Positions 29,301 through 56,111 are shown, numbered from the stretch's first letter. The stretch: 64,000 nucleotides of DNA from Octopus bimaculoides (GCF_001194135.2 NC_068984.1:72602639-72666638), one strand, 5' to 3'. Numbers and translations: made by a program. Notes: generated by a model not told the origin, from the sequence alone.

Positions 29301-30643
29301 CTAGCACATTTTTTTTAGAATGACACAGATTTATACTTGTTAAATTTCTTTGCAGAATTATTGAGTCAGTTTTACTTGCACCTCTGCAATTGTGTCAGGT
29401 GTAATACCTAAATATTGTTTTAGAGATAGCAACAGGATACAGGAACCATATACACACATACATATATATAACTTTACAGCTAGCCATATGCAACCCAAAT
29501 AGTTTACTTATGCTCAAGCCAGCTGAAGCCGGCCTTTCACACCTACCCTACAATGTAATTCTAAAATTAACCATTACACTATTGAAATCTCAAAGCTATG
29601 AGATAATGCATGATTAACTCAAAATAAGGTGAATAAATAAGCATAACATTTGACAGAGTAACCTGAATGCTAAAGGGTTAAACTCTAATAAGAATGAGTA
29701 CATAAGTACACAAAATGAAGTAAGCCAAGAAATTTTAATTACTTAAAATTACAGCTTGAATGATGAGCAAAGTGAGTATCTGACTAATTCTAATTAAATT
29801 TAAAAAAGGGCTTAATTTCAATTAAATGTGGAATGTGCAGGCAATTTTTTTTTATTTAATCTATTGCAATACATGAAATAACATTTTAATCTCTAAAACA
29901 CGTATATGCAAACAAAAACTAAGAATTATGAGTAGATTAATCGCTAATGTTTTTAACAATCAGTTATATTAAACAATCGGAGAGAAAACAAATTCAAATG
30001 GATATACTATACAGGCAGCCGACTGTGTTAATAGTGTTGGCTAGAGCTTAGTTTTTTTAACACAAAGTGGATGGGTTTCTTTTGAATTCCAACTGATTTT
30101 ATCATATTGTAAAGCATGTCAGAATATATATATATATCTCAAGCTTAGAAGCTTGAATAAACTCTTCATACTCATTGTTCAGTTTTCGACACTCAAGTTG
30201 TAANNNNNNNNNNAAAAACTAGTCATACCCCATTAAAGTGTCAGATCACCATCTGCGATCTGAAATACAAGATTACATGCATACACACACACAGAATTTT
30301 CAGAGAAACCACAAACACATCATCGTTGTTTAATGTCTGTTTTCCATGCTGGCATGTATGTATATAATGGGCTTCCAAACAGTTTCCATCTTGTAAATTT
30401 ACTCACAAGGCATTAGTTCGCCAGGGGTCATAGAAAACACTTACCCAAAGTGTTGCACAGTTATACTGAACCCAAAACCAAGTGGTTGCAAAGCAAGTTT
30501 CTGAACCACATTGCCATGCTTGCATCTACACATGCACACACCCATTATATTTAAGTTTTTAAAATATATAAGTTAAAAATTAGAGATCAATATAGCTACA
30601 GTAAACTTTCACTAGATAGTTACTGTCATCCAAAAAATTCATG

Positions 30644-30702: not shown

Positions 30703-30786
30703 TTATAAACTTTGGCTTTCCTCAGTAGATGTAGCATCAGCAGACCCTTCTTTGTCTTCTGTATTTTCTGATTCACCAATGGCAGA
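30703..30786 (-). CDS. GMNN: Geminin terminal coding exon (SAIGESENTEDKEGSADATSTEESQSL*), acidic tail
   Basis: Acceptor tatatttcag|, phase 0, TAA at 30705-30703, followed by an AATAAA. Confidence 0.88.
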   Translation of the reverse strand, partial: SAIGESENTEDKEGSADATSTEESQSL

Positions 30787-32375: not shown

Positions 32376-32465
32376 CTGTACAAGATTTGCAAAATCCTCA
32401 GCTTTTGATGCCAGCTCAGATAATGTTTCATTTTCATGTTTTAACATGTCATTTTCAAAAGTCAG
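32376..32465 (-). CDS. GMNN: Geminin coding exon 5, coiled coil (LTFENDMLKHENETLSELASKAEDFANLVQ)
   Basis: Acceptor ttttatccttttag|, donor CAG|gtaaaa, 90 nt; LK.EN..L.E.A pattern. Confidence 0.92.
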
Positions 32466-32650
32466 CTAAAAGGATAAAAATGTAAAACATGTATTTCGTT
32501 TTTTTTTATTTATCAATACATAAAAGGATGAAAAAGATTGATACATACTTCCTCAACTTTGGACTTTAATTGTTTGTTTTCCTCATGTAACTAAAAAAAT
32601 AAAAAATTTAAAAAAAAACGGAGTTTAGCTCACCACTGAACAAATGTATT

Positions 32651-36857: not shown

Positions 36858-36940
36858 TGCTTTATTTTCTTCTAAAGTTTCAGCAAGGGCTTGCCGTTGT
36901 TGTTCAGAATAATCTTTCCAGTAGGTTTCAGGAATATTTG
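36858..36940 (-). CDS. GMNN: Geminin coding exon 4 (NIPETYWKDYSEQQRQALAETLEENKA)
   Basis: Acceptor tttttttcag|, donor GCA|gtatgg, 83 nt; hallmark geminin motif YWK..E..R.AL...L.EN. Confidence 0.95.
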
Positions 36941-39617: not shown

Positions 39618-39792
39618 TTTCACACATTAATTCATTAGCCTCCTTTTCTGCGCTCTCTATGTTGGAGGTCTGCACAAGCCTTCTCTCAGTTTCTGTTGCC
39701 TTCCCTTCTGGTTTCGGTGAGTTTAAGTTCAGCTTTGAGTCTTGCAAAACAAGTGTTCTCTGTGTGGAATCAACCAACTTCGATTTTCCTGA
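39618..39792 (-). CDS. GMNN: Geminin coding exon 3 (SGKSKLVD...EANELMCE)
   Basis: Branch-point-like TTAAC, pyrimidine run, then first downstream CAG acceptor; donor A|gtaatt; 175 nt. ELMCE aligns with human DLMIK just before the coiled coil. Confidence 0.85.
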
Positions 39793-41509: not shown

Positions 41510-44500
41510 GGCATTGCTAGGGTAAGTGGTGCCCAAGGCAAACATCAAAATTGCTCTGCACCTCAACCAAAAAGTGGAAACTCACATAGAAAAAAATAAC
41601 TGATTTTTAAAAATTGCAATAACATTTAATTAAAAACTGACGAAAGATTACAATTTTATCCTCCATACCTTTAAGGAAGCAAACTGATCAATAATTTGTC
41701 TAAAATCCTTTCTCTCAAATTCATGACTTCCCATGCTGAGAAGGGCGAGATAATTGAGTTGTTGCTGGCTCATGGAGGTTCTCATATACGAAAGTATTAA
41801 TTTCAGCTGGCTGAAAGACCTCTCACAGCTGGCAATTGAAACAAAAATTGTCAGCATGATTTGTAGGCTGATTCACAAATTTTGAAAAATGCATTCATCT
41901 CCAAATTGAACAATGAATTCAAGGAGGGCTTCTGGTCTTGTAATCATTTTGGCTGTCCAAGTGGTCAGCAATGCTCTACAATTCAGTATTTCTTTGAAAA
42001 GGTGCTCTCCATTAACATCAGAACTGCATATGCCAGCAAAGACAGTTGCACTTCTTAAAGGTAGAGTTGTCAGAAACAGTTGTGTAGCACAAGCTACGGA
42101 CATCGAGAAGAAAACCAAACAAAGTCAGTTTCGTTAAGGCGAGTGAACCATTCTTCCATTTCAGTTTGAAGACAATTAAGACCATCCTTCATTATTCTTT
42201 CCAACTCTATCCTCGTGGTTAGTTTAGCGTCCTTAATATTTTCACCAGTGGATTGACGTCTTTCTTGCCTTCTCTGAAAACCGACATTCCATTCCTGGCA
42301 CAGAGCAAAGCCATCTTCAAGGGACTCACAAATCAAAGATTCTCCATCTTCAAAATAAATTCAAAGAGACTTGATAGCAGCAGCAGCACTGTGAAGTTCA
42401 TACTGGACTCTCAAAGTCTCTTTTGCACCTGGTCAATGCAAGAGAGAGAGAATCTTGTTCCAGAATCCCTGCAAGTTCAAGAAATAGCGGAGCATCCAAT
42501 TATAGAAATTGCAAGCATTACTCCTGGTCTCAAGTCTCGGTTTCATCATCACTAATTTTTTTAGAAAACTTGAATTAGTGAGAGATAATTCGCCACTGGT
42601 CCAACTGCAGCACTTCTTGCACGCCAACATGTATTTGACAGATATTTGACTAAGAGTTTCCCAGCGCAATAGCGAGTCACTTGTGCTAAAGAAGTTGATC
42701 ATAACCATATTGTTTTTGGCTGCATGTAGACCTGCCAGATTGAGGGAATGATTGTCACAATTATCGAAGTGTACCAAGTTCTTTTTCTGAGTCTTTGTTG
42801 AACCCCACTTCGGTGCCAGCCATTATAGCAGCATTGTCATAGCATTGTGATCAGTAGTCTTGCAGTGTAAGTTCATCGGTATCTAACTGTCAAAATTGTT
42901 TCAACAAGGCTTGCAGAATCTATTTTGCTTATCTGGATGAATCCAAGAAAAGATTCCTTACAAAGTCTTATTGACATCAACGTCCACATATTGCACAACT
43001 TTTGACAATTGCATGATGCGCCTGGTCAAGGGTCGAATCAATCAGTAGACCGTAATTTCTTGCTTCACGGATAGGCTTCAGTAAATTCTGACAAACTGCA
43101 GAGGGCATGATGTAGATGAATTTGTTTTGTATTTCTGGCGAAAGATATGACATGGATCCAGGATGGTATTCTGTTTGAGGTGTTCTTCCATGACGGGGTC
43201 AAATGTGGCAAGCAATTTAAGCAATCCAATGAAATTTCCGTTTTTGAACTCATCCTTCAGCTGAATTGACTCTCCATGCCCCTTAGATCCAGATTGTGAG
43301 TTACTAGGAATTTAATACAGTGAAGGATTCTAGTTAAAATTTCATACCACTTCTGTCTTTCATTTTCAATTTGTAGCTGAACTTCCCTAACGATAAGCCC
43401 TTTATTTTCAGCGACATTTCCCTCCATTTCTTCCCACAGCATAAAGCACTTGCAATGATCCTTGGAATTTTTGTGAATATGCATTCTTTCTGGTGCTTTC
43501 CGGTGATTAACCTCACATTCTTGCTGTAATGAAGATTGATGCTCTGATCATGAAAAGAAAAGGCAACATATGCGGAATAGACTTTTTTTAAGGAAAGTAA
43601 GTCATTAACTTCCTCACCACGACCATTTCCAAGTTTTTTCTTGAACCAACAACTGTTCATTGTCCATTTATTAGTATGGTAAAAAGGCCCTTCACTATCC
43701 TGAAAATATTTTGGACCCAGTTTTAGTATCTCCATTCTCAGTGATTCACACATAACTGCTTTCCCAGTCCCCTTGTTGAACTTCAAAAGCTTGATACCAT
43801 GTTGTACAATAACGTCTGACATGTCAGTTGGAGGTTTCTCATTTCCATCAAATTTACTTAATTCAGCTGCAGAGTGAATTTTCAATCACATTTACATCAT
43901 CAGCAACACAACTGCATTCTTCCTCTGATAGAACCGTATAAACAATCTCTCTAGCAGCTTCACTTTCCACCTCTTCTGGTTTTGACTGACCTGACGTATA
44001 TTCATCACTGTCATGATGTATTGCATTCAAAACTGCTTCAAATGCCTGTAACAGGTTCAGCCAACTTTGTTGTGCTGTTTGTCGAACAACAAGGTCCATT
44101 CCTAGCAAAATAGGACAATAGCATCTAGCTTTACTTCTGCCTCCAATTTTTGCCTGTTCTGTCCTTTGGCTCCACTTACCTTTTTCCCAAACATACGTTT
44201 GTTATGAAGGAAGAAAACGACAAGGTTTAATGCATATACGCTCATGATTATGAGATTGGAAGGCTACAATGGATATTACAATGTAACTTCATTATTCAGG
44301 CTGACACCAGTAATCTAACTTGTTCAAACAATTTCAAAGAAGACAAGTATATTTTCGTATAAAGTTTATTGTAGAAAAGATTTTCAGTACAAAAATAAGC
44401 AAGCAAAACTTGAATCAGAACTTTACAATCACACTAAAATTTGCTAGGAAATGAAAATCATGACTTCAGTGTAAGCCAAGCCTACATTTTGTCTCATATA

Positions 44501-46150: not shown

Positions 46151-48057
46151 TTTGCAGATTACAGATCTAGTTAACCTATGACAAGTAAGCAATATGGATA
46201 TCTGATATCAAAATGTATGTGGGGGTGGTTCCTTTCATGGCAAGGTTTCACATGTTATATTATGTAACTGTGTTACAACAGAGGATGAGAGTGAATATTA
46301 TTTTCTAACTAAACAAAACAGCCCTGCAGTCAAAGGGAGACGTAAGGAACATTGAACATGGGAAAAATTTGGCTCCAACATACAATGTGATAGCAGCCAG
46401 TTATCCTCTTACAAGAAATACTTCATGATGCAGTCTTTGACAAACTATATCTGTGAAACAAAATGGTGTTTAAATTGAGATCAGCTCTCATCAAGGACTT
46501 AAAGGCATTCCAGCCATGACCATCATGTCTTTCCCATGAGAACAGGCAACCCAAGACCACATTATCTAAAGTCTCCTTTTGTACAAGAGATTTAGCTACT
46601 ATTTCTGTTAAGTCAAGCAACTACATAGTGACTTTTCATTAAATCAGGGCCAGTAACAAGTGGTGGATGGGTGAATGAACAGAACATTTGACAAAATGTC
46701 TTACATTGCTATTACATGCCTTTGTTTCAAGTTCAAATTGCAGAAGTCCATTTCAAACCTTGATTCTTTCAGACTTGATAAAATAGGTATTAGTAAAACA
46801 CTGAAAGTGGTCTAATACTGTTCCAGTGTTAAAAATCATAATTTAAGGATTGGCTAAAATAACAACATGCTAAGCATGAGATTTCAGAATTGGAGAGTCA
46901 AGATTCAAATGAAAATGTTTAATCAATTGAAACATTTGCATTAGGTTAGCTAGATTCATTTTCCTCAATATAAATTTAAGCATTCTTTTATTTTTTCCCT
47001 CTACTTATTTCAGTCATTTGACTGTGGCCATGCTGGAGCACCACCTTTAGTTGAGCAAATCGACCCCAGGACTTTTTTTTGTAAGCCTAGTACTTATTCT
47101 ATCGGTCTCTTTTGCCGAACTGCTAAGTTACGGGGACATAAACACACCAGCATTGGTTGTCAAGCAATGTTGGAGTGACAAACACAGACACACAAACACA
47201 TATATACCACGGGCTTCTTTCACTTTCCGTCAACCAAATCCACTCACAAGGCTTTGGTCGGCCTGAGGCTATAGTAGAAGACACTTGCCCAAGGTACCAC
47301 GCAGTGGGACTGAACCCGGAACAATGTGGTTGGTAAGCAAGCTACTTACCACAGCCACTCCTGTGCCTGCATGTTAATATTAAATTAAAATAAGGCCATG
47401 ATGTAATAATGTTATATACAAAACTGCTTTTATGAGGAGAGAAAAAATTAGAAAGGCTATCTCAAAGATCTGCAGCAGGACTTTCAAGGTATGGAGAAAT
47501 GGAAGAAACCAATTATCATGGAAGCAGTTCAAGATGATGTATTATCAGACTGGATTCAAATGCTAGCAAGTGAGCACACTAAAGACACAATGTCTAGACA
47601 GTGGCCAAAACCGGACAACAGATTAGATTTAGCATTTTGGTACTATGAATAGAGTATGAACTTTTACATTGGCTGTCTTTACATATTTATATTTAGTAAT
47701 AATGTTAATGTAAGACAGTGAAACAGATTGTCACATAGTTAGACTGAGGAAAACAATTAGGCAGAGAGCAACAAAAGACTAATGGTAGCCTGAAGAGACA
47801 TGTTATGCAGCTAATTGAAGCATCAAGGGGAATAATTGCATTAAAAATTTTAAAAAAGACCCAGACACCAGTTACCCTATAATCCTTATTCCCAGAACTG
47901 AGCAAGGAATTAACATTATAAAGAGGATTGTGACAAAAACAATCTTTGTTAATTGTGTTACATCCACGACTTACAACAATGGTTCTCAAGGATTTTTGCC
48001 CTCTGATTTTACTTGGGTGGCTCCTCATAACAATTCAATGCCCAAAAAAATTCTACT

Positions 48058-48680
48058 GTATCCTTAGGTCCAGGAAGACCTGGGATGAGGTGGTGAGGCA
48101 CAACCTCCGAACATTGGGCCTCACTGAGGCGATGACTTCTGACCAAGACCTTTGGAAATACGCTGTGCATGAGAAGAGCCGGCAAGCCAAGCGAGATGTA
48201 AATCCAAGGCCTCTGCCAGGGGTGTAGCCAGCTCACTTATGGGTACCTTCCTTCATTGGACACTAAACTTCGCTTGCGAAGACTTGTTGAGACAAGTGAA
48301 ATCGGAATCAAACTAAATTCGACGACTGGCACCCATGCCAACGTCGTCTCCTCCATTGGACACGAAACTCGGCTTGTGAAGACCTGTTGGGGCAAGCGAA
48401 AGCGTGACTGCATCTGTGCTCAGCGTCGCCTTCCTGGCACGTGTAAAGACATTCGAGCGAGATCATTGCCAGTGCCGCTGGACTGGCTCCTGTGCAGGTG
48501 GCATGTAAAAGCACCCACTACACTCTCGGAGTGGTTGGCATTAGGAAGGGCATCCAGCTGTAGAAACTCTGCCAGATCAGATCGGAGCCTGGTGTGGCCA
48601 TCTGGTTCACCAGTCCTCAGTCAAATCGTCCAACCCATGCTAGCATGGAAAGCGGACGTTAAACGATGATGATGATGATT
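48058..48680 (+). mobile_element. RTE-clade LINE 3' end with (GAT)n tail; young, CpG-retaining
   Basis: RKTWDEVVRHNLRTLGLTEAMTSDQDLWKYAV, then a 3'UTR ending gcatggaaagcggacgttaaacgatgatgatg. Confidence 0.85.
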
Positions 48681-49559
48681 AAGAATTGTTAAAATATTGT
48701 GTGACAATAAAATCTTGTAAGGATATCTAAGGGCCATATGGACCTCAGTTGAGAACTACTGACATATAACAAGGGTGTAACTAGTTGTCAGAGTAAATAC
48801 TTTGATAACCAAATGCTTTCTCACTAATCACCATGAAACGGTGACAGTAATATTAATGTCCATACGGGCAATAATCCTGCCCTTTAGTATCAATCATTGT
48901 GCCTCAACATTTACCATCCATGTCTTTCCTATTAAAACTGCAGTGGATAGGAGAATGTGCTAAACCAATACAGATAGCTTTTGATTTCAAAGCTTTTACA
49001 TTACGAGAACATTTTGTTGCCAAAAGTTTTATAGTATGAGGAACTTGCATGTAGCTCTGATGCTATGTTGGCAACCCCTAGCTAAGTATCTTCATATCTG
49101 TTACAATTCAACAGAATGGTTCTTTAAATTGTAATACATAGCATCTTAGCTTGCTTTCCTTTGCTGCTTGTTTGAAAACATTTGTGTTACAAGTTCTCAA
49201 TTAAGAGATAATTAGGAACAAATAAACTGCAAGTTGAAAGTTACCTATAATTCTGCTGCCTACCCCCCTCATCAACACATTAAACAGGTCTATGACTAAA
49301 AGGCATTCCAGCCTTGATCATTCAACTATTTTAGGGATATCAAGAGCTTTCTCTAACTAGATCTTGTTTCTGTTTGGAATGGTGGATGCTGTGTACAGAA
49401 AGCAGAGAACACATTTAACATATCTGCAGGCTGTTCAGTAGAAGAGTAAAAATCCCACGAATGTCATTTTGTCTTTTCATCTGCCTAAAAATTTAAAATT
49501 ATACTAAATACCATGTATCATTTGCAGTTCTATCATTTGTTACTTGCAGTCTATGAAAA

Positions 49560-50380
49560 TTATAGACTACAGAAACCAAGTTAACTGAAGACCAAGGTAG
49601 CAGATAAATTTGGATGTTCAAAGGTTTGGGGTAATCCACTTTGGTTGGAGAGGTTGTCATGTTCCTAGATAAATTTTATTAGGAGTTACTGTTCTAGAAA
49701 AGACAATGCCACATCTTCATTGAACATTATCTTTCTGGTACAGGTTCTATGACTAGATGCCCCACCTAACATCAGCCTATTTATAGAGTGTATTGTGTGC
49801 ATTTCATCATGCACAAGCACCAGTGAAATTGTCCTGTGCACCACAATAACCTAAGGCATCTCTACTCATCCAAAGCAATATGCCTAAGAGAGTAAATAGA
49901 GAGAAGTGTTAAAGTGAGCAGGTTGAAGGAACCAGAAGTAGGACAGGAGAAATCAAGGATTATAATAGAAGACAGGGACAGTAATGGCAGATTGTAATGG
50001 GAGAGAGATAGTAACAGTAGAGGGAGGTAGGAGTGAGTTGATAACAGTAGAGGCAATGAGAACCAGATTAGATAACAGAAGAGTTTAATGAAAGAGACAG
50101 TGGTGGCAGCTATGTGTCTGTGTAATAAAGATTGAGTGGCAGGTAATAAGGATGAGAAATGGAAAGACTAAGCAATGGGCGACTGTGCAACCCGGAGCAT
50201 AGAGAGTGATGGCATGTAAGACAAAAACACTGACAGAGAGGAATGCAAGCAGAACTATACAAGTATTCTTGATAAGAGAGAGAGAGGTAGAGTGATAGGG
50301 GAGGTGGGACAGGTAGGGGTACTGAAGAAGAGCAAGTTTAGTGTAATTGTGCATCACTCAGGGACTTGATGCAATAAAAT
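49560..50380 (-). mobile_element. Decayed Penelope-like remnant in geminin intron 2
   Basis: Same composition and fragmentary motifs (TVAH..F, ILDFS..TSGSFN) as the other Penelope remnants. Confidence 0.4.
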
Positions 50381-50469
50381 GAAGAAGGGTGCCTCTACAT
50401 TTTCTGTCAACAAAGAGTTTTTTTTTTTTACAGCAATTTTAACCATATTTAGAATTTAATGAACATTAC

Positions 50470-50559
50470 CTTGGTAGGAATTAATCCACTTTTGCCCACT
50501 AGATGTGTGGAACCAACTGTTGCACATGGCTGGAGTTCCTGCAAAGAATCTCTCTTATT
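50470..50559 (-). CDS. GMNN: Geminin coding exon 2, destruction box (NKRDSLQELQPCATVGSTHLVGKSGLIPTK)
   Basis: Acceptor ttctctgttctttgcag|, donor AAG|gtaatg, 90 nt. RDSL..Q..A....LVG resembles human RRTLKMIQPSASGSLVG. Confidence 0.88.
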
Positions 50560-52801
50560 CTGCAAAGAACAGAGAATGGCTGAGTGGTAGGAAAAGGTAA
50601 ATGTAATAACTATTAAGTTCCTAACAAAAAATTGTATATGTCAAAAGACAAGACTTGTAATGATTTGAGCAGAAAATATCCAAAACCAGTGTCTTTATAC
50701 AACTATTTGGAGCATCTTTGTTTTAATACATTGGCTGTAATGCAACTCTTAGTTTCAATTTTTTTTCTTTAATATATGTAGCCATTTGGACTTAAAATAA
50801 TGTTGCACATGTATAAAGTTTAAAAAATGGAGAATAAAGATGTTAATAATGAATTAAATGCAATTACTATCAGTAATGATCATACATGTACTGCAAAAAA
50901 AAAGTCGTCCCACCTGTCCCATGCAGTTTAATATAAATTTGCAGGTAACAAAAAAGTAGTTTTGACTATTTTAACACAAAAACAGTTCACTTTCATCCTG
51001 TAGTCCTATGATTTATATCAAGAGATCGACCCATCGTCCATTAGGAACCTTCCTCCCAATTTTTTTGGCTTATAACCCAAATTACCTGAAAACATGTGTC
51101 AGCATAGGAAACGGATGTTAAATGATGACCTTGTCATATTTAAATGAGATTAATGCATATGTTGCTATGCCATGATAGCACAAGTACGTTACATTGCTGT
51201 TTGACTCGGATAGTGTCAATGAGGACCTGCAGAACTGATATACACTTGTATGCACATGTTGGGCTTTCAGTTTCCTTTTCCCAATTCCATTCAAAATGTG
51301 CTTGCATTAAGATATAGACAGCAAAACCAAGCCCCAAAATATGAAGCTGTGAAGTGAATTTCATAGCCACACAGCTATGCCTGCCCCTATAATACATGCA
51401 CACATCCTCTCATAATTCTATACTGATGGTCAGGTTTGCTCCCTTCTTAGAGACTACAATGATGTGGTAGGCCAATATCAGGGACTATTTTGTCAACACA
51501 CAGATTGTATTAAAAAAAAAAAAATACTTGATTGAAATGGCATGAAGTGTATCACCAACACAACTCGGTTCTTTTCAAGACGGCATAGCAATTCTCATCA
51601 CAGTAAAAATGGTGAGTTTTCTGAAAATTCAGGTTGAAAATGAGGACCAAGTTCGAGTATTTGAAAATTGACAAAACTACTCGGAAACGAATAGAACACT
51701 TTCGTTACTCAATAGTTTCGTTCTTCAATAATTTTCGTTTGCACTTCGTCATTTATATTCAACTTATCAATATGATCTTCTATGATGTGTTAATGTAAGA
51801 AACTGAGATACCATTGTATAAAACTGATACGACCGTCTCTGTACAAGTCCTTCACAGGAGGTCAATGGAGTTTCAAGTTTCCATAACAACATCAATTGCA
51901 TAAGTTCTGCATTAGCATTTCCTCACTACACACAAACAATATCTAGTTCTAGAAATTACATTACATTCCAATAGAAATTCAATGACATTAGCAAGATTGA
52001 TATTATTCATTGTAAAAGTGACATTCAAAGGCATGATTAAGCAATTTAAGAAGTTTACGTGTATCGGACTACAATAAATAACGAAAGTATTCAATAACGA
52101 ACACATTAACAAACAGAAGCATATAATAATGCCTCACAAGCAGAACTATTCAAATGAAAATGATTTTTCACTTTCTACGTATCAGTTCCTAAAGTTTTTT
52201 TGTTTTTTTTTTCTGAAATGGCATTCTTAAAACACGAGTACAAGAATACATGCTGTTTACATATTCACGTGAAAGGATACTAATTAAAAGCACGCCACAC
52301 ATTCTCTCCTAGCTAACAATTAAGTCTATTTCAAGACAAATTTCTAAAAATCTCGTCCGATGAAAGCGGTTTCGAAAAATGGTTGACGGATTTTAGGAAT
52401 AGCTGTCACGAATAAAATGGATTTTCTTTATAGAAAAAGCACAATTTAAAATTTTTCTAGACATTCTGGGATTTCACGTGTAACATAAATAATACTTCAT
52501 GAGCCAATGAGGGAGCCAGTGAAAACTAAAATTAAACCGACTTATTAAGTTTTAAAATATGATTAATGAACACCATACTTAGGAATTTTTGTAGATATTC
52601 GCGGATTCCAGCATGTCAATTCAATGTAGTCACATTTTGTAAAGGTATTGTTTACGTACATATCCAAAAACTTTACAATAGAACACTGACAAAATAATTT
52701 ATCCTAATATCAACGACATAATGAATTATAAAAAAAAGATTAAATTATCAGAACTAATAATACATTAATCCAGTATCAGAAATTCTTTCGCTTAGTGGTA
52801 G

Positions 52802-53163
52802 CTACAGCACACCTATACAAGTGTGTCCCCGACTTAGTTTCCTAAGAACGTTCAGAAAAATAGGTAAGTTTTGATGAACTTTTTCAACCTTTCACATGGT
52901 TTAACATTACGATTATATCGGAATTCAATGTGGAAAAAAAAAAAAGAATTAGGAGCAGATACAGATCCATACTGACACATTATGTCTATATAACTACGAA
53001 ATGAAACTAGAAATTCTGAAAAAATAAAATATTTGTGAGTATTTAATTTTGTTTTCCACATTAAATTCCAATACAGCACCTGAAAGGTATTTGTAAAAAA
53101 AATTCATTAGAACACAATTTTGCATGAAAGTTGGTGGGGTACAATTGTGTAGGTATGCCGTAA
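52802..53163. mobile_element. Degenerate foldback/MITE in geminin intron 1; related sequence at ~55440-55800
   Basis: The ends are imperfect inverted repeats (ctacagcacacctatacaag vs reverse complement ttacggcatacctacacaat); internal cctttca..ttatat..gaatt(c/t)aatgtggaaaa is also inverted and recurs at 55740-55800. Confidence 0.5.
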
Positions 53164-53367
53164 TTATATATGCTACATTTTCGGAGGAACAACGGCGAAA
53201 TAAAACTTAGATTTGTTTCGACCAAAGATTAGTCCAGGCCATGTCTAACTTGATAATATATTATTTAAATCATAAGTTAGTAAACAGTACTTGTACAAGC
53301 ATTAACTCTATAATATGTGTCACTGTATTTAATGTTAGGATAAGTAGAAACAAATGTAATAACTAAC

Positions 53368-53391
53368 CGACAACTGGCATTTCTTTCCCAT
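53368..53391 (-). CDS. GMNN: Geminin coding exon 1 (MGKKCQLS)
   Basis: ACC-ATG-G Kozak context at 53391; phase-0 donor TCG|gttagt at 53367; lies just downstream of the E2F/CCAAT cluster. Too short to confirm by homology. Confidence 0.7.
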
Positions 53392-53485
53392 GGTTTGATA
53401 TAAGTATACAACTGAGGCAGCAGAAGTAAATACAAATGGCGAACAGCTGATTACTGCTTCTCTTCCAAACTTTACTTCCTCCAAA

Positions 53486-53563
53486 TTTCCCGCTACATTT
53501 GTAGGCGCGATTTTGATTGGTTTAATTTCTGAAGCATGATTAGCATAAATTATCGTAAATTGG
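53486..53563 (-). promoter_or_regulatory. Geminin promoter: E2F site TTTCCCGC (53486-53493), E2F-like GGCGCGATTT (53504-53513), CCAAT boxes (ATTGG at 53516 and 53559)
   Basis: The motifs are seen directly ~100-170 nt upstream of the ATG. Vertebrate geminin is an established E2F target, and E2F plus NF-Y is the typical cell-cycle promoter architecture. Confidence 0.7.
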
Positions 53564-53769
53564 ATTGACAGTGAATAGTGGAATACGAAGTTTTGATACA
53601 AGTTGGCTCATGTGTTTACATATAAACACGTATCTATCTCTTTATCTATCTAATGCATATGGATATGATATATGTCTATATTTATAAAGTGAGAGAGAAA
53701 GCGCTATAATAACATACTCAGCATAACAACCCGTTATTAATTCAGGGCTAATTTAAACACACTCATACA

Positions 53770-53803
<34 letters not shown>

Positions 53804-55221
53804 GTATGTATATATTTATATTTCATGGATAAAATCTATCTATTTAGGATTGACAGTGCTATATAAATAGTTTTTATCAAACTCTTGACTACCTTCTATT
53901 TCTTCACATATACACATCAGCAGTTCTATGCAGCCGCTTAACTTTTAGAAACAACAGCTAAATCGCTCTTAAACCACTATTATTTCGTATTGCAAATTAT
54001 TACAAAATATTTATAAAGAACATATTAGATATTCTAGATACACATAGCCTGGAAATAATTACACAGGAAGCATGTCTTTGATAGGAATTCTTTTAAATAA
54101 AAATGAAAATAATACGAAAAAGAGAGGGGGGAAAAAAAAACATTTCTGTCAGTATATTGTAAATTATCAACTACAGTAAAGTCACATTCGTATTTTTCAT
54201 CGGCTTTTATTGTTGGAATTTAAACCCTTTTAACACCCTCTTTCTACCGAAGTACACTGCCTCTGTTTCAATTAATATTGTAAATAATGAAAATTTAAAC
54301 TATCATTATTAGCTGGTGTTTGGAACGTGAGTTTAAATATAATTTTGATGGCAGTTTTTAGTTTAGATCACTTTAAAACGAAGTTTGCATCATAGAATTA
54401 GGAGCAGACTTAGCAGGTTGTTAGTAGAAAATAAAGTAAGATTTCACTGCTATTTCTAGCATGTCCGACAGCTGAAAAATACTTTCTTTTAGTCTATTAA
54501 ACGGCTTTTTTTCTTCTTTTTTTTTCTGATGGTGATGAATTTTATCAAATAAATTCTGCTCCCCTAAAGCTGTTGAACCACAGTACTGACCAAAAGCGTA
54601 CTACGATCGAAATCGAAAACAACCACAGAAGTGTACTTGGTTTCTTTCAGAGGAAACTAATGCTGGCCTACACCGGCAATTAACGAGTAGGCATGATTTC
54701 AATCGTCTAAAGCATCTTCTTCGTGGAAGACACATTTATTCAACATTTAAGTCATTTGCACTTGTTTAGGCTTAGCGGATTTGTATACGGTCAGTTTTCT
54801 TTTTCTTTTGTTATAAAGGCGATCGAAACAAAAATAAAATAAGTACATGTTGTGTTTGATCGAAAGAGAGAGATAGAGAACAGAGAAGTTAATAAGCAAA
54901 ACAAGAAACAGGAAAAGAGAATAGAAACTGTATAGACAGGTAGTTAAGGAGAAGGAGAGGGATGAAGAAAGATACTGAATGAAAACTGTAAACCATAAAT
55001 ACATCTTGAAGCACTTTAACTTAACTTTTCTTGTTTGTTTTAGCAACGACAAAGGTCACTTCCGTTTTCTCACTCACCCTCGCGCTTCGATACATGTCAT
55101 CTTTATTTTTATTTTTGCTTTTTTTAATTTTTCTTTCATATTTTTTTGTATTTATTGATTATATTTTGGATTTTTATGAGATAAAATTTTCTCAATAGCA
55201 CTAAGAGTAAAAGATGTTTTA

Positions 55222-55428
55222 GGTACTACTAAAGCAGCGTGGTCCCGAACGCGCAGTCACGCGTCCGCGCTAGCTAGTCGTGATTGGTAGATCCTAACCC
55301 TAACCCTAAACACGTATTCATTTACGCGCGCACGCGCACTTTTTGTAGGATCGACCACTCACGACTAGCTAGCGCTGACGCGCAACTGCGTGACTGCGAG
55401 TTCGGGACCACGCTGCTTTAGTAGTACT
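55222..55428. mobile_element. 207-bp foldback MITE with 9-bp TSD (Mutator-like) and internal (CCCTAA)n
   Basis: Perfect TSD GATGTTTTA at 55213-55221 and 55429-55437; long TIRs GTACTACTAAAGCAGCGTGGTCCCGAAC...; CCTAACCCTAACCCTAA at 55293-55309. Confidence 0.9.
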
Positions 55429-56111
55429 GATGTTTTATATGACACATTCTACCAGTGTCCCAAGTTTGAAAGTGTTTCGTTAAGAAAACAAGAGGCGCCC
55501 GCCAAATCAGAAATGTACCCCACTGATTTTGTTTCCTCATAACTTCCACAAAAATGGTTACTTTTTAACGAAATTTTCTACAAATACGTTTCACATGGTG
55601 TAGAAGCCGCTTATATCTAAATATGTTGTGATAAAAACGTTTCGGGGAAGTTTGGACAAAAGATTTTTAAAATTCACAAGAGTCGACTTTCTTTCCTCAT
55701 GACTTTCGAAGAAAAGGAGTATTTTTAAATCAAAATATCTACAAATACCTTTCAGCGTGTCTAGAGTACGATTATATAAGAATTTAATATGGAAATACAA
55801 AGTGGTGGGATAGAACACATACATACTGACATACATCACATCTTTATATATATATACAGACATACATACATGCATAAAGCAATGCGTATACATATACAAA
55901 TGTTCCCCACCAACTTTGTTTCATTATATCTTCCAGAAGAATGAATATTTTTCAATTAGTCTTTTACAAATATGTTTAAGAGGGTTCAGATTCCGATTAT
56001 ATCTGAATTTGTTGCGAAAAATGTATTAAGGGTGTGTAGGGAGAGAAGATACAGAAAATTGATACAGGTCGGCTTTCAAGAATTCGCTTATTTCTTCCTT
56101 CCAAGCTACAG

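Follow-up and report, generated by a model that had tools for sequence, protein, structure and literature searches.

Geminin has to be destroyed by the APC/C (the anaphase-promoting complex, or cyclosome) at mitotic exit if Cdt1 is to license replication origins, and McGarry and Kirschner are said to have found in 1998 that geminin deleted for its destruction box (D-box) is a non-degradable inhibitor of licensing. Here we consider a 64,000-nucleotide stretch of the Octopus bimaculoides genome (GCF_001194135.2 NC_068984.1:72602639-72666638; hereafter the window), in which exon 2 of the geminin gene, the exon that bears the D-box, has at its start a decamer that occurs twice, 21 nt apart. An earlier note on this DNA (the original prediction) had taken the pair for a tandem 3′ splice acceptor, whose distal AG would excise the D-box core in frame and so switch between degradable and stable geminin. 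We propose instead, at a probability of roughly 0.7, that exon 2 has one ordinary, strong acceptor, that the inner copy is a look-alike formed by D-box codons and ends in a CAG that is a weak cryptic acceptor at most, and that the degron is removed by skipping of the whole exon.

The closest precedent is that of Nek2A and Nek2B, in which alternative splicing strips away APC/C degrons, leaving an isoform of greater stability (PMC4729826). There, as in octopus geminin, a cell-cycle protein targeted by the APC/C carries its degron in an alternatively spliced segment, and the D-box-less octopus form is likewise predicted to be stable; in Nek2, however, a KEN box and an MR tail are lost through an alternative C-terminus, whereas the octopus gene has an internal 90-nt cassette bearing a D-box and known from gene models alone. 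Drosophila MCPH1-B, the only splice isoform of its protein reported to be a substrate of APC/C-Cdh1 (PMC4154303), is another isoform-specific case, in a different protein. NAGNAG-type and other short-distance tandem 3′ splice sites resemble the octopus arrangement in having two in-frame AGs close together near the exon start, each preceded by YAG; competition between AGs is documented at distances of less than about 12 nt (PMC1431707), whereas the octopus pair stands 21 nt apart, separated by three further AGs, and an isoform from the distal site is not on record.

Searching the window with octopus geminins (tblastn) placed the geminin locus on its minus strand, in seven coding exons, and a protein homology search with a composite query of the exon peptides returned the geminins of O. 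bimaculoides and O. sinensis. The spliced product of the window (195 aa) is identical to UniProt A0A0L8HYC3 / XP_014768380.1 and matches the Pfam Geminin family (PF07412) over residues 4-190, with 56.8 bits against a cut-off of 22.2; the window therefore holds the O. bimaculoides geminin locus. PF07412 is also precomputed for database matches of the geminin query, and the YWK..AE.RR.AL segment that precedes the coiled coil (YWKDYSEQQRQALAETLEENKALHEENKQLKSKVEELTFEND in octopus) aligns with its counterpart in 69 relatives, which were gathered by an exhaustive HMMER search with the O. sinensis X1 query.

Gene models from three Octopus species include exon 2 in four cases and skip it in five, MGKKCQLS (exon 1) being fused directly to SGKSKLVD (exon 3) in the skipped models:

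Exon 2 present: O. sinensis X1, XP_029635304.1, 196 aa
Exon 2 present: O. bimaculoides A0A0L8HZH7, 181 aa
Exon 2 present: O. bimaculoides A0A0L8HYC3, 195 aa
Exon 2 present: O. bimaculoides XP_014768380.2, 264 aa
Exon 2 absent: O. sinensis X2, 166 aa
Exon 2 absent: O. vulgaris CAI9721777.1, 166 aa
Exon 2 absent: O. bimaculoides A0A0L8HY95, 165 aa
Exon 2 absent: O. bimaculoides A0A0L8HYC5, 151 aa
Exon 2 absent: O. bimaculoides XP_052823105.1, 234 aa

The four UniProt entries of O. bimaculoides are all the combinations of two cassettes, the 90-nt exon 2 and the 42-nt exon 5, and the single (longest) product recorded for the O. vulgaris gene is the skipped form, though exon 2 is intact in the genome. 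Exon 2 has the make-up of a cassette: it is bounded by cag and by AAG/gtaatg (here and below a slash marks the splice junction), measures 90 nt, and is set between an exon 1 that ends and an exon 3 that begins in phase 0. Its donor is average, and its flanking introns are 2.8 kb and 10.7 kb long. The D-box is also encoded by a discrete phase 0/0 exon in other molluscs, namely Argonauta hians (90 nt, L003 5834-5923), the scallop Mizuhopecten (96 nt, L006 2809-2904) and the abalone Haliotis (93 nt, L007 1429-1521), and its skipping would keep the frame in all three.

We suggest that inclusion of exon 2 yields a geminin degradable by the APC/C, while skipping would yield one with an intact Cdt1-binding coiled coil (exons 4-6) and no canonical N-terminal D-box. 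Because its sole canonical N-terminal D-box would be lost, the skipped isoform should resist the APC/C and persist through G1. Splicing thus probably does toggle the geminin degron, as gene models indicate; the idea of a switch between degradable and stable geminin is in that respect supported by annotated exon skipping, and not by the distal AG to which it was first attached. Exon 2 skipping is already in the databases; we found it described in no paper, and a full-text literature search returned no description of a natural D-box-less geminin isoform. If octopus tissues do skip exon 2, this would be a natural means of making stable geminin in animals, and such geminin could keep post-mitotic cells out of cycle or serve non-replicative roles.

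The D-box in question is RDSLQELQP, within RDSLQELQPCATVGSTHLVGK, which by its sequence is clearly the orthologous D-box segment. It fits the geminin consensus R-[KR]-[ST]-L-[QK]-x-[LI]-Q-[PL] except at position 2, and combines an RxxL core, the extended geminin consensus and a disordered N-terminal setting. Like the vertebrate D-box, RRTLKMIQP, it lies near the N-terminus and reads R-x-S/T-L-x-x-L/I-Q-P, followed by xAxxGSxxLVG; it differs in having D at position 2, where K or R is usual, and its degron role in octopus is predicted. In human geminin residues 23-26, RRTL, fall within the D-box, and R-x-S/T-L there forms an Aurora-A consensus at Thr25 (PMC3675325), which octopus keeps as R-D-S-L. 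A D-box scan covered 88 sequences (87 proteins and the exon-2 peptide of the cephalopod-like contig L004 described below, with several near-identical members of one cluster among them); the pattern R..L..[LIVM]Q occurred near the N-terminus in 48 of the 88, followed in many by xAxxxxxLVG. Position 2 was K or R in 38 of these 48, position 3 S or T in 42, position 5 Q in 33 and position 9 P in 31, the L at position 4 in all 48 being fixed by the search pattern itself. Read off the protein sequence, octopus geminin has just one further RxxL, the RQAL with which the coiled coil begins. A candidate second D-box in exon 3, STQRTLVLQDSKLN (STQRTLVLQDS, 39735-39770, minus strand), resembles vertebrate RRTLKMIQPS but was rejected, both because it reads QRTL and not RxxL and because its R is T in Argonauta (QTTLVLKNK).

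The elements that bear on the choice of acceptor, and the remaining exons, lie in the window as follows:

53391-53368, minus strand: exon 1 (MGKKCQLS), ATGGGAAAGAAATGCCAGTTGTCG, ending in phase 0; donor TCG/gttagt, with its gt at 53367
50597-50601, minus strand: predicted branch-point-like yUnAy motif UUUAC, with its branch A at 50598, the nearest such motif to both AGs (-39 for the proximal, -60 for the distal)
50560-50579, minus strand: proximal 3′ splice site, the annotated one, with its polypyrimidine tract, ccattctctgTTCTTTGCAG; AG at 50561-50560, used by models P0005, P0007, P0076 and P0077
50559-50470, minus strand: exon 2, 90 nt, phase 0/0, NKRDSLQELQPCATVGSTHLVGKSGLIPTK, donor AAG/gtaatg; annotated cassette bearing the D-box
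50549-50556, minus strand: purine-rich AAGAGAGA, the K-R-D codons near the exon 2 acceptor, which contributes the three AGs that separate the two CAGs
50527-50553, minus strand: destruction-box codons R-D-S-L-Q-E-L-Q-P
50539-50548, minus strand: inner decamer TTCTTTGCAG, which is (GA)T TCT TTG CAG (D-S-L-Q); potential cryptic distal acceptor, AG at 50540-50539
39618-39792, minus strand: exon 3 (beginning SGKSKLVDSTQRTLVLQ), 175 nt; joined straight to exon 1 in the D-box-less isoforms
36858-36940, minus strand: exon 4 (NIPETYWKDYSEQQRQALAETLEENKA)
32549-32590, minus strand: exon 5, 42 nt, LHEENKQLKSKVEE; second annotated cassette, within the coiled coil
32376-32465, minus strand: exon 6 (LTFENDMLKHENETLSELASKAEDFANLVQ)
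30703-30786, minus strand: coding part of exon 7 (SAIGESEN...ESQSL, then stop)

On the minus strand, positions 50579-50527 read ccattctctgTTCTTTGCAG, then AATAAGAGAGATTCTTTGCAG, then GAACTCCAGCCA; a shorter reading of this stretch runs ccattctctgTTCTTTGCAG, AATAAGAGAGATTCTTTGCAG, GAACTCCAG. The copies of TTCTTTGCAG, at 50569-50560 (outer) and 50548-50539 (inner), make up an exact direct repeat, 10 nt long, with its two members 21 nt apart, and a start at 50538 instead of 50559 would remove 21 nt, that is NKRDSLQ with the R and L of the D-box, and keep the frame. All of this agrees, in coordinates and in frame arithmetic, with the original prediction, which had also rightly named the gene as geminin, the segment as exon 2 and its RxxL as that of the D-box.

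As an acceptor the distal AG is poorly set up. Scored with a position weight matrix (PWM) for 3′ splice sites, which was hand-made as a generic approximation and is crude, the proximal site reaches 9.45 bits, a value attained by 6 of the 7028 AGs in the window, and the distal site, some 9 bits lower, reaches 0.23, attained by 1048 of them; the exon 2 acceptor is the strongest in the gene by this measure. Pyrimidines occupy 14 of the 16 positions from -20 to -5 at the proximal site and 7 of 16 at the distal one, which is preceded by AGs at -23, -17, -15 and -13 and by a purine run; the original prediction had itself entered the caveat of a short pyrimidine tract with AGs just upstream. Between -40 and -4 the acceptors of exons 3, 4, 6 and 7 are free of AGs, and a single AG is found for exon 5 (at -40) and for the proximal site of exon 2 (at -22); octopus and Argonauta share a UCAG block, at about -25 to -22. 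The 59 nt upstream of the distal AG are devoid of yUnAy motifs, and the first to be met, at -60, is the UUUAC at -39 from the proximal AG. The distal site therefore has neither a tract and branch point of its own nor a distance of less than about 12 nt from the proximal AG, as a tandem 3′ splice site would. Purine-rich AAGAGAGA, for its part, may act as an exonic enhancer of the proximal site.

Products of the distal AG were sought in three ways. Among the nine sequences in the clusters that hold all octopus geminins (gene models) none was a 7-residue-deletion protein; exact look-up among about 15 billion proteins found none of the three proteins that such a deletion would give, two of O. bimaculoides (188 and 174 aa) and one of O. 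sinensis (189 aa); and homology searches, one of them with the N-terminal 124 residues, returned the four known clusters alone, with no deletion form. The products on record are of the proximal-site and exon-skipped types only, and isoforms from each of the two AGs, as expected of a tandem site, are not seen among them.

In our proposal, then, this 23-nt spot would be the normal strong 3′ splice site of exon 2, and GAT-TCT-TTG-CAG (D-S-L-Q), 21 nt inside the exon, would happen to repeat ten of its bases. Judged from its sequence context, the distal AG is probably not used to any appreciable extent. Of the alternatives, the one that fares best, though we consider it unlikely, is that the distal AG is used as low-level splicing noise, at a few per cent or less and with neither regulation nor function. 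Short-distance alternative acceptors are common minor events; this CAG has a 6-nt pyrimidine run and, being in frame, would give a product that escapes nonsense-mediated decay. The intervening AGs, however, point to very low use.

Comparison of species bears on the inner copy, whose conservation in other cephalopods the original prediction had held to be informative. O. sinensis and O. vulgaris have the decamer pair unchanged, but these differ from O. bimaculoides by only about 2% in exons (7-15% in introns) and all 28 same-residue codons of exon 2 are unchanged among Octopus, so that identity within the genus is uninformative. Argonauta has tgttgtttgcag/AAT as its acceptor and, at the inner position, AAC ACC TTG CAG (AACACCTTGCAG), which matches the decamer at 7 of 10 positions, has its pyrimidines interrupted and scores -2.65 (PWM). 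TTG CAG itself is kept in Octopus, Argonauta and a Logan contig (L004, from SRR27666070, cephalopod-like), where 11 of 19 and 8 of 18 comparable codons are unchanged in Argonauta and L004 respectively (that is, 42-56% differ); by a rough estimate (p ~0.1) its retention is unremarkable. The Leu-Gln pairs of the D-box read CTG CAG / TTA CAG and TTA CAG / TTG CAG in scallop and abalone, and YTR-CAG stands at the inner position in every mollusc geminin that we examined, because L and Q are conserved D-box residues; as far as these codons tell, the internal YAG is a by-product of conserved Leu-Gln. The tandem acceptor is thus mainly a caution, in that a degron ending in Leu-Gln (YTR-CAG) automatically yields acceptor-like sequence inside an exon.

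Several points weigh against our proposal and should be set beside it. The strength of the sites, as PWM scores, does not by itself exclude the distal AG, since genuine acceptors of this gene score as low or lower (exons 3, 4 and 7, at -5.0, 0.18 and -5.0). The inner sequence of L004, ATT TCA TTG CAG, matches the decamer at 9 of 10 positions, and the absence of a deletion form from gene models would leave room for minor or tissue-specific use of the distal AG. The 60-nt flanks of exon 2 are the best conserved of the gene between Octopus and Argonauta, a pattern typical of regulated exons, and yet the elevation is weak (z ~2 on both sides, against -1.8 to 1.3 for other exons); within Octopus their identity, 90-93%, is barely above the 85-89% typical for introns of this gene. 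The exon-skipped isoforms, finally, are computational models, whose abundance, translation and product stability are predicted, and an exact-product look-up found no transcript contigs matching the 165-aa and 195-aa O. bimaculoides isoforms.

This last point invites the view that exon 2 skipping is an artefact of annotation, or noise, and that octopus geminin always has its D-box. Every skipped form being a computational model would fit it, as would the rank of the exon 2 acceptor, which does not suggest a weak exon. We nevertheless find this view rather improbable: skipped models come from separate sources (a UniProt/GenBank submitter, RefSeq and an ENA submission) and from three species, O. 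vulgaris is recorded with the skipped product alone, and the exon is symmetrical, with 90 nt and the flank conservation described above.

A regulated tandem 3′ splice site, at which the distal AG would excise the D-box core in frame and give stable geminin in particular cell types, fares worse still, and we regard it as very unlikely. It has in its favour the identity of positions -10 to -1 at both AGs, a G at +1 of the distal one, a 21-nt distance that preserves the frame, a decamer pair identical in three Octopus species (which, with 28 of 28 synonymous codons unchanged, says little) and a distal PWM score equal to that of the genuine exon 4 acceptor. Against such a switch stand the lack of any deletion protein in annotations or among the ~15 billion proteins, the four AGs and purine run just ahead of a site with no branch-point motif of its own, and the loss of the pyrimidines in Argonauta. 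Moreover, the scanning rule holds that the first AG past the branch point is chosen and that AGs compete only if less than about 12 nt apart (PMC1431707), and with 21 nt between them the proximal CAG should therefore win. Were the proximal AG lost, for example by editing, the distal CAG would not come next, since AAG at +6 and GAG at both +8 and +10 precede it; the AAG at +6 is in frame, and its use would drop N-K alone and retain RDSL. We also considered a hairpin masking the proximal AG or its pyrimidine tract and rejected it: folds do pair the tract with AAGAGAGA, but no better than shuffled sequences do (z of -0.67 for 126 nt; +0.79, +0.17, -0.51 and +0.19 for 56-nt windows in four species).

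A combined scheme of two-level control would join exon 2 skipping with an Octopus-specific duplicated acceptor that excises the 7-residue D-box core and keeps the conserved LQPxATVGSxxLVG, being used in certain tissues or once the proximal AG is lost; to this we give equally little credence. If true, it would be a natural and exact equivalent of the laboratory D-box deletion mutant. The hypothetical junction of 53368 to 50538 would read K-C-Q-L-S-E-L-Q-P, with the spacing of the D-box R-D-S-L-Q-E-L-Q-P and K in place of R; the resemblance is probably coincidence, although the 7-residue-deletion product might not be a clean D-box null.

The decamer repeat is real, and yet it is not strong evidence of function, because short-range repeats are common in the window and the inner copy is fixed by the D-S-L-Q codons, which are common ones in a conserved peptide. 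A priori it is improbable that a given 10-mer should recur less than 30 nt from a given site, and the window contains TTCTTTGCAG three times against 0.27 expected (none of 100 shuffles reached 3), the third and unrelated copy lying on the plus strand at 29346; the window has, however, 51 exact direct repeats that measure 10 nt or more and stand 10-30 nt from each other, against 3.2 in Markov-1 simulations. No inverted repeat was found near the pair in the repeat search. An origin of the pair in a recent tandem duplication of 21 nt at the border of intron and exon is scarcely credible and was dismissed, since the exact direct repeat at 21-nt spacing that suggests it stops at 10 nt between unrelated flanks (by eye, 1 of 10 positions match upstream and 1 of 11 downstream), and the Argonauta exon, also of 90 nt and with the same peptide layout, argues that nothing was inserted.

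Further observations concern the geminin contigs and models. The geminin transcript contig L004 (1-396, SRR27666070; also L005, SRR27666073) has a D-box exon, NKRISLQSLQPSATVGSNELVGKNTLINPIFK, of 96 nt, preceded by 300 nt that end in tttag and hold an in-frame TAG, so that the D-box is untranslatable from an upstream AUG as assembled; this suggests that the leader is a retained intron 1 or that there is an internal start site. Protein P0009 of the database (MINPIF...) is an artefact, its TTG start being due to gene calling in the prokaryote style. RefSeq XP_014768380.2 and XP_052823105.1 carry 69 extra residues upstream of MGKKCQLS (window 55027-55095 and ~53392-53553, minus strand), which begin with the ATG of an exon further upstream (MYRSARVSEKTEVTFVVAKTNKK) and then read through the apparent 5′ untranslated region of exon 1; this extension is probably a model artefact, because octopus UniProt, O. 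sinensis and O. vulgaris proteins start MGKKCQLS and the Argonauta equivalent is MVKRTQSS.

The second cassette, exon 5, is missing from A0A0L8HYC5 (151 aa) and A0A0L8HZH7 (181 aa) and is separated from exon 6 by an intron of 83 nt. Its 14 residues make two heptads of the coiled coil, and skipping would shorten the Cdt1-binding coil and, by this count, leave the heptad register unbroken. Outside the molluscs, two models of one geminin of the ant Ooceraea biroi (P0014 and P0078) fall in one 90% cluster; one, of 179 aa, has a D-box, RKSLHELQP, and the other, of 140 aa, lacks it and may be either a truncated model of earlier date or a further isoform without the D-box.

An Rfam scan of 47000-56000 gave no match. 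Within the 10.7-kb intron 2, a run of open reading frames lies on the gene strand at about 41600-44250 (minus strand); four of those tested had no Pfam match, and the other, at 41648-41857, matches PF05699, the hAT transposase C-terminal dimerisation domain, with 26.9 bits, the intron thus holding a degraded hAT-type transposon.

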